Made by a program: the position numbers and the translations under genes. From positions 186,001-250,000 of the IMG/VR virus record IMGVR_UViG_3300027969_000039: 64,000 nt of DNA. One strand, 5' to 3'. The first letter of the stretch is position 1. Each line of letters starts with the position of its first letter. Below, one piece after another: positions 58,315-64,000 of this stretch. Below the pieces are notes generated by a model, which was not told the DNA's origin, ran no database searches, and saw nothing but the letters and a program-made list of their open reading frames with translations.

Positions 58315-61300
58315 ATGGCAACATCACAAAGTCAAATTGTTGATTTACTATTTAAACAAGCGTTTGGCGTTACAAAAACCGACACGGCTGCAAACAAAAG
58401 CCCTAGTAATGAATCAATACCTAGTCCCGCATTAATTCGCGGTGACACAATTTGGGTAGAATCAGATCAAATACCAAATCCAGCTGCTGCTACAGTAGAT
58501 ATCGTACAAGCATATTTGGGTGCAAATGCAGTACAAACAGTAGCAGATACCACAACAGTTCCAATTGGTGGTATATATCCAACGTGGAAAACTAATTTAA
58601 CAACTTGGATACCACAAGAGTTTGGCGCTACTTATACAGTTCAAGTATGGGTAGATAGTTCGGGAGTAGCAAATCCAACAAGTACAGGTACTCAGATATT
58701 TGCTGACGGTTCAGGTGGCACAGGACAATATTACTATAACTATCAATCGGGTGTACTTAACTTCATAGGGGAAACAATCCCTGCACCGTTAGTAGCCGGT
58801 AAAGTATTATACATTGTAGGATATAGATATATAGGTGTAATTGGTATAACTAATTCTCCTTCGGGAGGGGCTGGCGCAACTGGCGCTACGGGTGCAACTG
58901 GATTAACAGGTATACAAGGAACAACAGGCGCAACAGGTGCCACTGGATTTAGTGGTGCAACAGGAACAACCGGTGCTACGGGTGTTGTAGGAACTACAGG
59001 TGCAACAGGTGCAACAGGTTACATAGGAACAACTGGTGCTACCGGTGCTACTGGTGAAATAGGTACGACTGGTGCCACTGGTGCTACTGGATATATTGGG
59101 ACAACTGGTGCTACTGGAGCAACCGGATTTAATGGTAGTACTGGCGCTACAGGATTAAATGGTGACACAGGTGCAACAGGTGCTACGGGAGAAATTGGTA
59201 GTACTGGAGCAACTGGCGCCACCGGTGCAACTGGATTAACGGGCAATGATGGTGCAACAGGTGCAACGGGAGCAACCGGTTTTGTAGGTACAACCGGTGC
59301 TACTGGCGCAACAGGTTACATAGGAACAACTGGTGCTACTGGCGCAACAGGTGAAATAGGAAGTACAGGTGCAACAGGTGCTACTGGATATGACGGGGCA
59401 ACAGGCGCAACAGGCGCAACAGGATTATCTGGTAATGAAGGAGCAACTGGTGCTACTGGATATATAGGAACAACAGGTGCAACGGGTGCAACGGGTGTGC
59501 AAGGAACAACTGGTGCTACAGGTGCTACTGGATACACCGGAACAACTGGTGCTACTGGCGCCACCGGATTAACTGGTAATGACGGTGCAACTGGTGCAAC
59601 AGGTGAAATAGGAAGTACAGGTGCAACTGGTGCAACAGGTGAAATAGGGAGTACAGGTGCAACGGGCGCTACAGGTTACATAGGAACCACTGGCGCGACT
59701 GGTGCTACTGGTGAGATTGGTGCAACCGGTGCAACTGGCGCCACTGGATATACAGGAACAACTGGTGCTACTGGCGCAACAGGTGAAATAGGGAGTACAG
59801 GTGCAACGGGCGCTACAGGTTACATAGGAACAACCGGGGCCACAGGCGCAACTGGATATGATGGTAGTACAGGTGCAACTGGATTAACTGGTAATGATGG
59901 TAGCACAGGTGCAACAGGATTAACAGGCAGTGATGGGGCAACTGGTGCAACTGGGTTAACGGGTAATGATGGAGCAACGGGTGCTACTGGCGCAACTGGT
60001 TATGTTGGTACCACAGGCGCTACAGGTGCAACTGGTTATGTTGGTACCACTGGCGCTACTGGCGCAACAGGTGAAATTGGTAGTACAGGCGCTACTGGGG
60101 CTACAGGGTACATAGGAACTACAGGCGCTACTGGGGCCACAGGTGTACAAGGCACAACTGGTGCCACAGGCGCCACCGGATATGATGGAGCAACTGGTGC
60201 TACTGGTGAAATTGGTAGTACTGGCGCGACAGGTGCAACTGGATATGATGGTTCTACCGGTGCAACTGGACAAGCCGGAGCAGACGGAGACAAATATTCA
60301 ACTACATCAAACACATCATTTACGTTAGGCAACACTGGTAATCAAACGATTACATTAAATGATTTAGTTGTTGATTATTCTACCGGACAAGATGTCACTG
60401 TAGCATATGATGTTAATAACATTCAATATGGAACTGTAATCAGTTATAATCCTATTAATGGTGATTTAGCATTTAAGAAAGTAGCTTTTATTGGATCGGG
60501 TACATACGCTACATGGTCTGTAAACTTATCGGGAGCAGTGGGCATTCAAGGTGCTACTGGATATCAAGGTGCCACTGGAGCAACAGGTTATATTGGAACA
60601 ACAGGTGCTACGGGTGCAACTGGATATGACGGAGCAACAGGTGCTACCGGGGCAACTGGTACTACTGGAGCAACAGGTGTACAAGGAACTACGGGTGCGA
60701 CAGGCGCTACTGGATATGATGGTAGTACAGGTGCTACAGGTGCTACTGGATATAATGGAGCAACGGGTGCAACAGGTGCTACAGGCTACATAGGAACCAC
60801 TGGTGCTACCGGAGCAACAGGAGAAATTGGTAGTACTGGTGCAACTGGCGCCACTGGATTAGACGGAGCAACAGGTGCTACTGGATTAGACGGAGCAACA
60901 GGTGCTACTGGATTAATAGGTAACGATGGTGCAACTGGTGCAACAGGTATTGACGGTGCAACTGGTGCAACTGGCGCTACAGGATTAAATGGTGCAACAG
61001 GTGCTACTGGATATATTGGAACTACTGGTGCTACTGGTGCTACTGGATCAGATGGAGCAACAGGTGCAACTGGTGCCACTGGATATGATGGTGCAACAGG
61101 AGCAACAGGTGCAACAGGTGAAATAGGAAGTACAGGTGCAACAGGTGCTACTGGATACATTGGAACAACAGGTGCAACAGGTGCTACTGGTGTTGTAGGA
61201 GCAACAGGTGCAACAGGTGCTACTGGAGTAGACGGTGCTACTGGTGCTACTGGAGTAGATGGCTCTACTGGTGCTACTGGAGTAGATGGAGCAACGGGTG

Positions 61301-64000
61301 CAACTGGTTATGTTGGTACCACTGGCGCTACTGGCGCAACAGGAGAAATAGGTAGTACTGGGGCAACAGGTGCTACTGGATACATTGGAACTACAGGTGC
61401 AACAGGTGCTACTGGTGCTACTGGAGTAGATGGAGCAACGGGTGCAACTGGATACGACGGATCAACAGGAGCAACAGGTGCTACAGGTGTAATAGGAACA
61501 ACTGGTGCTACTGGAGCAACCGGATACATAGGAACAACTGGTGCTACTGGAGCAACCGGTTATATAGGCAGTACAGGAGCAACAGGTGCTACTGGCGAAA
61601 TTGGAGCAACAGGTGCCACCGGCAATGATGGTGCTACTGGAGCAACAGGTGCAACCGGTGTCACTGGAAATGACGGAGCGACAGGTGCAACGGGCGCTAC
61701 CGGTGAGATTGGTTCAACTGGTGCCACCGGATCATCAGGAGCGACAGGTTATGATGGATCAACAGGTGCTACAGGCGCTACAGGTTACATAGGAACAACT
61801 GGCGCCACGGGAGCAACTGGATATGATGGTACCACTGGCGCTACGGGAGCAACTGGATATATAGGAACAACAGGTGCAACAGGCGCAACTGGTTATGTTG
61901 GTACCACTGGTGCTACAGGCGCAACTGGTTATGTTGGTACCACTGGTGCTACAGGCGCAACTGGCGCTACTGGTTACGATGGCTCTACTGGAGCAACCGG
62001 TGCGACAGGAGCTACTGGTTATGTTGGCGGTACGGGTGCTACAGGTTTTACTGGAAACGACGGGACAACAGGCGCTACAGGTGCAACAGGTAATGATGGT
62101 GCGTCTGGAGCAACAGGCGCTACAGGTTATATAGGTGCTACTGGTGCTACTGGTAATGACGGAGCAACAGGTGCAACCGGTGCTACTGGTAATGACGGAG
62201 CAACAGGCGCTACAGGCATACAAGGAACAACTGGCGCAACAGGCGCTACAGGATACATAGGTACAACTGGTGCTACAGGTGCAACAGGTATACAAGGAAC
62301 AACGGGTGCTACCGGCGCTACAGGATATACTGGTACTACTGGAGCAACCGGCGCTACTGGATCAGATGGAGCAACAGGCGCTACAGGCGCTACCGGTTAC
62401 ATAGGAACAACTGGTGCAACAGGTGCTACGGGAGAAATTGGTAGTACGGGTGCTACTGGTGCCACAGGATATGATGGAGCAACAGGTGCAACTGGTGCAT
62501 CCGGTATTGCAGGAGATAGATATTCCACAACATCAAACACATCATTTACGTTAGGAAATACTGGTAATCAGACTATCTTTGTTAATGATTTATATGTTAA
62601 TTATTCAACCGGGCAAGAACTAATTGTTGCTTTTAATGTAGGTAATATTCAATATGGAACTGTAACTACTTACAATCCAGGCACCGGTGCATTATTATTT
62701 GTTAAAGAGACTTTTATTGGTTCAGGCACATATGCATCATGGACAGTAAACTTATCGGGTGCAATTGGCATTCAAGGAAATCAAGGTTCAACTGGTGCAA
62801 CTGGATATGAAGGTAGTACTGGTGCAACAGGTGCCACCGGAGAGATTGGATCAACAGGTGCCACCGGGGCAACAGGGTATATAGGAACAACTGGTGCTAC
62901 AGGTGCTACTGGTGAAGTAGGTGCTACAGGTGCAACAGGTGCTACTGGATATGATGGTGCAACAGGAGCAACTGGTGCTACTGGCGAAATAGGAACAACT
63001 GGTGCTACGGGAGCAACTGGTTATGTTGGTACCACTGGCGCTACGGGAGCAACTGGATATATAGGAACAACAGGTGCAACAGGTGCAACTGGTGAAGTAG
63101 GTAGTACAGGTGCCACAGGCGCAACAGGTGAAGTAGGTAGTACAGGTGCTACTGGTGCTACTGGTGCTACAGGTGAAGTAGGTGCTACAGGTGCAACAGG
63201 TGCTACTGGTTTAATTGGTAATGATGGTGCAACAGGTGCTACTGGTTTAATTGGTAATGATGGTGCAACTGGTGCAACAGGTGCAACTGGATACGACGGA
63301 TCAACAGGAGCAACAGGTGCTACAGGTGTAATAGGAACAACTGGTGCAACAGGTGCTACTGGTTTAATTGGTAATGATGGTGCAACTGGTGCAACAGGTG
63401 CAACTGGATACGACGGATCAACAGGAGCAACAGGTGCTACAGGTGTAATAGGAACAACTGGTGCAACAGGTGCAACTGGATACGACGGATCAACAGGAGC
63501 AACAGGTGCTACAGGTGTAATAGGAACAACTGGTGCAACTGGTGCAACAGGTGAATATGGCGCTACAGGTGCTACTGGATATGACGGAACAACCGGCGCA
63601 ACAGGTGAAATAGGTAGTACAGGTGCTACAGGTTACATAGGAACAACTGGTGCAACTGGTGCAACAGGTGAATATGGCGCTACAGGTGCTACTGGATATG
63701 ACGGAGCAACCGGCGCAACAGGTGCGACTGGTGCAATTGGCTCTACGGGTGCCACTGGTCCAGTTGCAGGTAGTAACACACAAGTTATATTCAATGATGC
63801 AAGCGTAGCAGGTGCAAGTGCTAATCTAACGTTTGATAAAACAACTAACGCACTAACTGTATCAAATGGCAATGTATATCTTCCTACTACAAATACTGGA
63901 ATAATAGGTGGTGTTTTAGGACAATCATGGGCAGGTGGATTCAATGGTAGTACACAATATTTAACTGCACCCGCCCCAGTTATTGGTACTAGTATATTCA
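58315..64000 (+). CDS. Giant collagen-like fibre protein, 3' end truncated by the window edge (>1895 aa; missing from ORF track)
   Basis: ATG at 58315 ([23 protein letters not shown]...). Three Gly-X-Y blocks separated by two homologous ~80-aa domains, then [11 protein letters not shown]... and FNGSTQYL, the possible start of a LamG/lectin-like domain. Confidence 0.9.
58873..63765 (+). repeat. Collagen-coding 9-bp-period repeat (GGN GCN ACN dominant), three blocks
   Basis: Blocks at about 58873-60288, 60532-62514 and 62758-63765. Confidence 0.95.

Follow-up and report, generated by a model that had tools for sequence, protein, structure and literature searches.

A segmented, threonine-rich collagen-like protein predicted to form a long virion fibre in an uncultured freshwater jumbo phage

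In a 64,000-nucleotide stretch of a virus genome from IMG/VR (bases 186001–250000 of the single 303,057-bp record IMGVR_UViG_3300027969_000039; hereafter the window), we identified a gene for a protein of 3,009 amino acids (aa) that is dominated by Gly-X-Y repeats. We consider it probable that this protein forms a homotrimeric, segmented collagen-like virion fibre of an uncultured freshwater T4-superfamily jumbo phage and that the fibre serves in host capture, which we judge its most reasonable role and which an earlier note on this DNA had also proposed. Three identical chains would wind into five triple helices, giving ~570 nm of helix and a fibre of ~0.6 µm overall. The helices would be strung between globular trimeric domains, i.e. 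a 183-aa anchor, two nodes, a 336-aa block with a laminin G-like (LamG) domain, then a 121-aa domain and, at the C-terminus, one of 218 aa. Phage fibres often contain short collagen segments and long bacterial chains are on record, so a protein of this kind is known and not unprecedented. What is new is a giant beaded shaft that has neither imino acids nor salt bridges and is carried on a widely shared anchor cassette.

The gene begins with an ATG 8 nt past the stop codon of a gene for a 775-aa protein and runs on the plus strand out of the window, where it is stop-free in translation for 1,895 aa (58315–63999). Codons 1–1,895 of 3,009 thus lie in the window (58315–64000), and the full open reading frame (ORF; genome 244315–253344) continues for 3,344 nt beyond its end. 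Gly-X-Y runs were located by a script requiring Gly at every third residue, and helix length was computed at 0.286 nm per residue. The N-terminal anchor domain (aa 1–183; 58315–58863) matches phrog_9417 (7.4e-32) and is a predicted beta-sandwich. It is followed by collagen block 1 (aa 184–660; 58864–60294; 159 triplets, ~136 nm, no Pro), by node 1, a 79-aa non-collagen beta domain that fills the gap between Gly-X-Y runs (60295–60531), and by collagen block 2 (aa 740–1402; 60532–62520), which comprises 221 unbroken triplets (~190 nm), again with no Pro. The next gap holds node 2 (62521–62757), a 79-aa paralogue that is 73% identical to node 1, and collagen block 3 then extends over 112 triplets (aa 1482–1817; 62758–63765; ~96 nm) to a last triplet of GPV. 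Within block 3, Tandem Repeats Finder (TRF) detected tandem units with a period of 117 nt, or 13 triplets (62996–63724).

The 336-aa central non-collagen block starts at 63766–64000 with a junction motif (...FTFD) and the first strands of a Laminin_G_3 domain, which is completed past the window. This junction motif recurs in relatives and in a neighbouring 2,607-aa fibre protein. After the central block come 108 triplets, the 121-aa domain, a last collagen block of 46+7+10 triplets and the 218-aa C-terminal domain; the last collagen block is interrupted twice, each time by a two-residue 'LG' insertion. A Pfam scan placed the Laminin_G_3 (ConA-like lectin) domain in the central block (2.5e-19) and gave a weak DUF4183 match for the C-terminal domain. 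A lectin-like tip had been predicted from the window, and such a domain does follow the third block, but it sits mid-fibre, with a further 108 + 63 triplets, the 121-aa domain and the C-terminal domain beyond it.

Strict Gly-X-Y triplets number 492 in the window (159 + 221 + 112) and 663 in the whole protein (runs of 159, 221, 112, 108 and 46+7+10). The five blocks correspond to ~136, 190, 96, 93 and 54 nm of helix, summing to 569 nm, of which 422 nm is encoded in the window. These values bear out the earlier note, which had counted 157 + 220 + 112 triplets and estimated ~400 nm. Gly at each third residue through 221 triplets cannot be chance, and unbroken Gly-X-Y runs are retained in relatives at 2–25% DNA divergence. 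In agreement, the Pfam Collagen model (PF01391/IPR008160) matched in 13 stretches with a score of 668.9 bits, the cut-off being 27.2. Judged by its sequence, the protein belongs to the collagen-repeat superfamily. Since the 79-aa nodes split the runs, the longest single helix is 221 triplets, below the 338 of vertebrate fibrillar collagen; the suggestion that the shaft is longer than such collagen applies to the sum of the interrupted helices only. Its length is also less exceptional than the earlier note had proposed. According to one survey (PMC11923368), prokaryotic collagen-like chains reach ~2,000 triplets, with many interruptions, and bacterial and viral collagens are enriched in T-G-A triplets; both the length and the GAT motif therefore have precedents.

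The composition of the repeat is unusual for a collagen. GAT is the commonest triplet in the window (262), followed by GTT (48), GST (32), GYI (22), GEI (18), GYD (18) and GND (14). Ala fills 54% of X positions and Thr 72% of Y positions, and Pro accounts for only 0.2% of X. The sole Pro among the window collagen triplets is that of the final GPV, exactly as the earlier note had read this GAT-dominated region. Over all 1,989 collagen residues there are three Pro (0.15%), two of them in the junction GPV-AGSNTQ, and Lys/Arg likewise make up 0.15%; a count over 1,938 collagen residues gave 90 Asp/Glu, three Lys/Arg and two Pro. KGD, KGE, RGD and RGE were all absent in a scan of the 663 triplets. 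The collagen unit consists of four triplets, one bulky or acidic (GYI, GEI, GYD, GND, GVQ and others) and then G(T/S)T, GAT and GAT, with bulky triplets spaced by four in 103 cases and by three in 50. The usual stabilisers, i.e. imino acids in ~20–60% of X/Y positions or Lys/Arg–Asp/Glu pairs, are therefore lacking. Both are typical of collagens, not defining, so that membership of the superfamily stands and it is the mode of stabilisation that differs.

Comparison with surveyed collagens places this composition at an extreme. In published tables (PMC3368898), X is Pro in 22% of viral collagen triplets, and Y is Lys/Arg in 38% and Thr in 9% of them; in the collagens of Gram-positive bacteria, X is Ala in 23% and Y is Thr in 48%. 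In sequence terms, the protein is an extreme of the bacterial Thr type and is unlike the typical viral type. Lys-Gly-Asp/Glu salt bridges have been proposed as a common folding clamp and are most abundant in viral collagens (PMC11923368). With almost no Pro and no Lys/Arg–acid pairs, stability of the helix must come from other features. Those that could provide it are the Thr in 72% of Y positions, acting through hydration or O-glycosylation, the bulky or acidic triplet that recurs every four triplets, and the trimeric nodes. The peptide (Gly-Pro-Thr)10, as quoted in PMC11923368, is a random coil unless glycosylated.

The earlier note had advised looking for glycosyltransferases elsewhere in the genome, and candidates were indeed found. 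One is a glycosyltransferase family 4 (GT4) gene (Glycos_transf_1, 1.3e-24; genome ~158.7–159.7 kb, minus strand) that adjoins a metallophosphoesterase gene. Another is an NAD-dependent sugar epimerase/dehydratase gene (5.3e-33; genome ~76.8–79.0 kb) adjoining a 456-aa ORF with a weak GT1 match. Both the GT4 and epimerase genes could act in fibre glycosylation, and DNA or sugars of the host envelope are equally possible targets. No GT2-family glycosyltransferase was found in the phage genome.

The collagen region also stands out at the DNA level, with a G+C content of 47–50% compared with 33–40% elsewhere, because of its Gly, Ala and Thr codons. In the collagen gene, GGT and GGC make up 67% of Gly codons and ACT and ACC 50% of Thr codons. 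At the contig end, outside the window (genome 301469–303009), are 11 tRNA genes including Gly(GCC), Thr(GGT), Ala(TGC) and two Ile(GAT); Gly, Thr, Ala and Ile are four of the collagen gene's commonest residues. ARAGORN also reported a gene resembling transfer-messenger RNA at genome 162886–163259. Several ORFs of 80–178 aa overlap the collagen gene on the minus strand or in other frames (59316–63998; e.g. 61759–62295, minus strand), and these are by-products of the repetitive codon composition, not genes.

Trimerisation was assessed by co-folding three copies of aa 634–766, which comprise nine triplets, node 1 and nine further triplets, together with controls. The trimer scored 0.57 compared with 0.00 for the best control, with a partner pLDDT (predicted local distance difference test) of at least 86 and contacts that agreed to 98% from run to run. 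The mark applied to this score is reached by 21 of 30 solved homo-pairs and by none of 23 single chains, and since it was calibrated on two copies it applies roughly to three. In both collagen flanks, contacts between chains were staggered by a single residue, as a triple helix would show, and node 1 made inter-chain contacts. This in silico model supports trimerisation, short of demonstrating it. It is also consistent with a role for the non-collagen nodes, which probably set the register of the chains and re-nucleate each helix.

Repeats of this kind can be misassembled, and the length of the gene might be an artefact of a shorter repeat that was over-assembled or mis-joined. We regard this as highly improbable. 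The DNA repeat is degenerate, with TRF units only 65–80% alike, and when the ORF is cut into k-mers (k = 77), all but 121 of 8,954 are unique. The repeated ones lie in a single stretch (ORF nt 4910–5224) inside the 117-nt units of block 3, the gene's only exact DNA repeats of at least 77 nt. A pattern scan of IMG/VR with a 22-residue stretch of the shaft retrieved contigs from other metagenomes, and three of them are 100% identical in DNA over 8.4, 4.0 and 2.4 kb of the ORF (L019, nt 1–8399; L023, nt 5043–9030; L030, nt 1–2361). In addition, runs at the same locus are equally long or longer in relatives from other studies, and the reading frame is open throughout 9 kb. On the other side, Logan short-read contigs of the likely source runs all break in the repeat and include many spurious joints. 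In four runs, such contigs were exact wherever they could be placed, including at both node junctions; they leave the length unconfirmed, as other collagen genes pile on. A further contig (L037), 97–98% identical and from another metagenome, has 99 rather than 112 block-3 triplets, exactly one 117-nt unit fewer, reflecting either a natural length polymorphism or a local assembly collapse. Over-assembly, which the earlier note had named as what would overturn its proposal, is largely excluded by the identical contigs; it is very unlikely for this gene, and the triplet count is uncertain by ~13.

The 183-aa anchor matches gp074 of the Caulobacter phage phiCbK (6e-24) and gp324 of the Agrobacterium phage Atu_ph07 (9e-7). 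The 775-aa protein encoded immediately upstream (phrog_8578, 1.2e-86; 55980–58307, plus strand), hereafter the partner, matches phiCbK gp073 (4e-65) and Atu_ph07 gp325 (4e-25). Among GenBank phages, the anchor and partner pair occurs only in phiCbK-like Caulobacter/Brevundimonas siphoviruses, Atu_ph07, Sinorhizobium phage Phosso and Salicola phage SCTP-2; megablast of GenBank phages with the partner gene and the start of the fibre gene gave no match. The anchor gene directly followed the partner gene in all nine contexts examined. The partner family has more than 1,119 metagenomic homologues, and in these proteins the C-terminal ~550 aa are strongly conserved and the N-terminal ~220 aa variable. 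Both Atu_ph07 gp324 and gp325 were detected by mass spectrometry in purified virions (PMC6102473 supplement), and homology to them supports the prediction that the fibre is a virion component.

The anchor is far more widespread than the collagen behind it. It occurs in 717 cluster representatives, the proteins concerned ranging in length from 188 to over 4,400 aa. In 52 long proteins the anchor is conserved at 43–83% identity, yet none of the 52 has a Gly-X-Y run of five or more triplets, and short Gly-X-Y runs occur in only four of 141 further representatives. The non-collagen shafts are Asn-rich repeats with the same junction motifs. Even the syntenic gene of one relative (L006) has an anchor 80% identical to the present one but no collagen. 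In contrast, the closest relatives found via the partner gene carry GAT collagen behind the same anchor. They include L014/L015 (runs of 29, 129 and 201 triplets) and L017, all truncated where their contigs end, and L016 (JGI 3300081888, contig Ga0672971_0000436). In L016 the orthologous fibre gene (7996–17988) is called at 5,971 aa, and its first 3,331 aa contain 674 triplets with unbroken runs of 259 and 315, beyond any run in the window's protein. Conversely, GAT collagen, the 79-aa node and LamG are also found behind other N-termini, for example in a 1,953-aa protein designated P0055, where the node again sits between GAT collagen blocks, and in IMG/VR proteins with 297, 378 and at least 489 triplets. 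A conserved anchor with unrelated shafts is the pattern expected of an attachment end with exchangeable distal parts. By these comparisons, the anchor appears to be the conserved attachment end, and collagen one exchangeable type of shaft that has expanded in a small freshwater subclade.

Together, these observations suggest how the fibre would work. The anchor most likely attaches it to the particle through the partner, on whose conserved C-terminal part it would dock, host surface glycans are the likely ligands of the LamG and C-terminal domains, and the long flexible shaft would enlarge the capture radius of the particle in dilute lake water. Several points weigh against this reading. The fibre is known from its gene alone, with phage and host uncultured, and peptide studies lead one to expect only marginal stability of a collagen with neither imino acids nor salt bridges. 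No short-read contig of the source runs crosses the repeat, all being broken within it. Matches to PHROGs annotated as tail fibre come only from the collagen and from short shared motifs. An AlphaFold2 (AF2) model of the anchor (pLDDT 74) gave just generic beta-sandwich matches (Foldseek E ≥0.09, VIA Z ≤5.7) and hence does not indicate where it would dock. For the partner, AF2 gave a model of low quality (pLDDT 52), so that gene adjacency is what points to the docking step. Sequence searches of PDB chains with the anchor, partner, central block, 121-aa and C-terminal domains returned no credible match, and an ESM Atlas feature search with the partner returned unnamed viral clusters only, below 0.9. 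A resemblance of the partner's C-terminal jelly-roll to a fold of the carbohydrate-binding module type was considered and set aside, as its Z of ~6 is within the range of noise.

Where such a fibre would be mounted can be read in more than one way. It may be a conventional, very long tail fibre at the baseplate periphery with the partner as its proximal segment or adaptor, for which the T4 gp34–gp37 chain and the branched fibres of RaK2-like jumbo phages are models; we put the chance of this at somewhat less than even. A conserved N-terminal end with variable distal parts is the usual layout of phage fibres, and known phage collagen-like proteins are tail or side-tail fibres (PMC3368898; phrog_1806). 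Neighbours in the gene cluster match tail-fibre PHROGs and a tail-fibre-assembly-like family, and in Atu_ph07 the cassette adjoins the tail sheath and tail fibre genes. However, the baseplate genes of the present phage (gp5-like, gp6-like and a 6,459-aa neighbour) are on the other strand, 25–55 kb away in the window, and no baseplate-attachment domain was recognised in Pfam, PHROG or fold searches. The tail-fibre PHROG matches, moreover, arise from collagen and short motifs. Alternatively, the fibre could be a head filament or whisker mounted on the capsid or neck, similar to the flagellum-catching filament of phiCbK or the whiskers of Atu_ph07; we hold this possible but doubtful. The cultured phages with the cassette are only the phiCbK-likes, Atu_ph07, Phosso and SCTP-2; phiCbK-like phages bear a head filament (PMC3556154), and the long thin whiskers of Atu_ph07 are primarily capsid-associated (PMC6102473). 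In phiCbK, gp073–gp074 come right behind the head genes, and gp76, which has been proposed as the head filament, lies two genes further on; in the present genome, too, the cassette directly follows the head module. Between the LamG regions of the fibre and gp76 there is even a weak alignment (27% over 183 aa, E 4e-6). Yet this similarity is confined to generic LamG, with none in the C-terminal domain, and in Atu_ph07 the genes neighbouring the cassette carry tail sheath and tail fibre annotations. Nor is a place behind the head genes diagnostic, as PA5oct, which has no cassette, has a tail fibre gene soon after its capsid gene.

The boldest version combines several of these elements. The protein would be a 0.6-µm 'fishing line' on the capsid or neck, the cassette would be the device that also holds the phiCbK head filament and the Atu_ph07 whiskers, and a helix with neither imino acids nor salt bridges would be held together through phage-directed Thr glycosylation or through Thr and hydration. 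We think this combination rather unlikely, but if true it would provide a natural exception to the salt-bridge folding code that has been proposed as universal for collagens. Finally, the protein might not be a virion fibre at all, and instead be a released or host-surface matrix, aggregation or decoy protein, or its Gly-X-Y regions might not be triple-helical, as a composition without any of the known helix-stabilising features could suggest. There is very little to recommend this when set against the other evidence. The N-terminus of the translation has, by eye, no look of a signal peptide and has instead a conserved phage-specific anchor, the homologue of which is a virion protein in Atu_ph07, and the gene lies within a late structural block. 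In addition, the trimer co-fold passes its controls and Gly periodicity is kept across diverged relatives. A homotrimeric virion fibre for host capture therefore remains the interpretation we favour.

Among characterised proteins, the nearest counterparts of the fibre are side-tail proteins of the EPclA type. EPclA and EPclB are side-tail fibres of Escherichia coli O157:H7 prophages and, as here, are phage-encoded with collagen flanked by separate non-collagen domains; they were shown to be trimeric with a rod-plus-globules shape and are thought to act in host attachment (PMC3368898). Their collagen domains are short, at tens of triplets, and have Pro at 48% of X positions and Lys/Arg at 31% of Y positions (PMC3368898), whereas the fibre described here has 663 triplets in five blocks, with 0.2% Pro, 0.15% Lys/Arg and Thr in 72% of Y. 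The PfN, PCoil and PfC domains of the EPclA type were absent from Pfam and PHROG scans of the fibre. A trimeric, hair-like filament on a particle surface is formed by BclA of Bacillus anthracis, which has Thr in Y of most triplets, no hydroxyproline and O-glycosylated Thr; BclA and related collagen-like glycoproteins of the exosporium are cited in PMC11923368 and PMC8968730. It consists mostly of GPT triplets, up to ~90 of them, and has a C1q/TNF-like C-terminal trimerisation domain. The fibre resembles BclA in its Thr-rich Y positions (72%) and in having no hydroxyproline, but Pfam gave no match to a C1q/TNF-like domain in its non-collagen parts, only Laminin_G_3 and the weak DUF4183 match. 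Cuticle collagen of Riftia pachyptila, as cited in PMC11923368 from Mann et al. 1996, is a very long helix in which galactosylated Thr in Y takes the place of hydroxyproline as stabiliser. It is an animal extracellular protein that still has Pro and is unrelated by descent, and Thr in Y is what the two share.

The phiCbK block has its gp073/gp074 homologues in the same order and spacing as the partner and anchor here, and lies just after the head genes, but phiCbK is a siphovirus and its anchor is a separate 232-aa protein, gp074, not fused to a fibre. Its gp76 is a 2,799-aa Gly-rich protein with a central ConA-like lectin domain (PMC3556154). gp76 is non-collagen, with poly-Gly runs and 7% Pro, and shows no full-length homology to the fibre. 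The idea that the protein is a fusion of gp074 and gp076 was likewise dropped, because similarity to gp76 is limited to the LamG domain. Atu_ph07 is a T4-related jumbo myovirus with the same two-gene cassette and long thin appendages ('hairy whiskers'; PMC6102473), and its gp324 has 310 aa without a collagen shaft. Surveyed prokaryotic collagens (PMC11923368) include long interrupted chains as here, but the Lys-Gly-Asp/Glu clamp proposed for them is absent from the fibre. As the defining domains of EPclA, BclA and gp76 were searched for and not found, the fibre falls outside these families on present sequence comparisons.

The rest of the genome agrees with a large T4-like phage. The record is a 303 kb IMG/VR virus genome judged 86% complete. 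PHROG matches include a T4-type late sigma factor, SbcD- and SbcC-like nuclease subunits and a RusA-like resolvase, and, among structural proteins, a gp5-like hub with lysozyme, a gp6-like wedge, a portal, a prohead protease and a gp23-type capsid protein. Capsid proteins of jumbo myoviruses, among them Vibrio phage 2.275.O and Pseudomonas phage PA5oct (66% each), are 64–66% identical to the last of these. The stretch is complete in three 2017 freshwater metagenome runs and partial in many other freshwater runs. These matches identify an uncultured T4-superfamily jumbo phage of fresh water. The T4 late-promoter motif TATAAATA was not enriched (3 matches compared with 11.7 expected), and none was upstream of the fibre cluster.

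The collagen gene is the fourth of a set of tightly packed fibre-like genes after the capsid gene, with products of 527, 1,358, 775 and 3,009 aa. The first, directly after the major capsid gene (50281–51864, plus strand), shares motifs with the others and has no Pfam or PHROG match. The second (51900–55976, plus strand) encodes a fibre-like protein that shares its N-terminal motif with other cluster members, and residues 841–1075 resemble phage proteins annotated variously as tail fibre or capsid decoration. This motif, PFNSVGGFSVG (PFNSVGGYTVG in the 527-aa protein), is common to the 527-, 1,358- and 775-aa proteins, and these and the unrelated collagen fibre P0055 all start with a similar MA..PFNSVGGFSVG. 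It may act as an N-terminal attachment peptide that they have in common and that is separate from the 183-aa anchor. Downstream of the collagen gene are genes for a 298-aa protein, which matches the end of a tail-fibre PHROG, a 2,607-aa protein and three phrog_2295 paralogues, followed by ribonucleotide reductase. Proteins of the cluster share short motifs, and the cluster, which includes the matches to tail-fibre PHROGs and to a tail-fibre-assembly-like family, is mosaic.

Collagen is not confined to this gene. Three more ORFs of the phage have Gly-X-Y runs of at least six triplets: a 596-aa ORF with 62 triplets (genome 45397–47184, minus strand), a 1,588-aa ORF with 75 (genome 40615–45378, minus strand) and the 2,607-aa tail-fibre-like ORF with 117 in short runs (genome 255652–263472, plus strand). 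Several fibres of the phage therefore appear to use collagen segments. The 1,588-aa type of protein recurs in IMG/VR contig 3300009158_000034 (L028). Elsewhere in the window, the largest gene of the genome encodes a 6,459-aa protein (1811–21190, minus strand) directly downstream of the gp6-like wedge gene (21218–24592, minus strand) and is presumably a giant baseplate-attached protein. A homing-endonuclease-like gene (phrog_655, 6.2e-43; 37954–38604, plus strand) lies between the SbcC-like and RusA-like resolvase genes. Just upstream of the portal gene, a 1,141-aa protein (40785–44210, plus strand) has an endolysin-like region at aa 920–1050 (phrog_2649, 7.8e-10) and may be a virion-associated lysin.

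A fibre several times longer than the particle would change estimates of encounter rates between large phages and their hosts in dilute waters. A 663-triplet helix with neither of the textbook stabilisers would be a clean natural test of what holds collagen helices together, and its node-bounded segments are easy to express. The link from the anchor to the phiCbK/Atu_ph07 cassette, in turn, provides a testable candidate for how head filaments and whiskers are attached.

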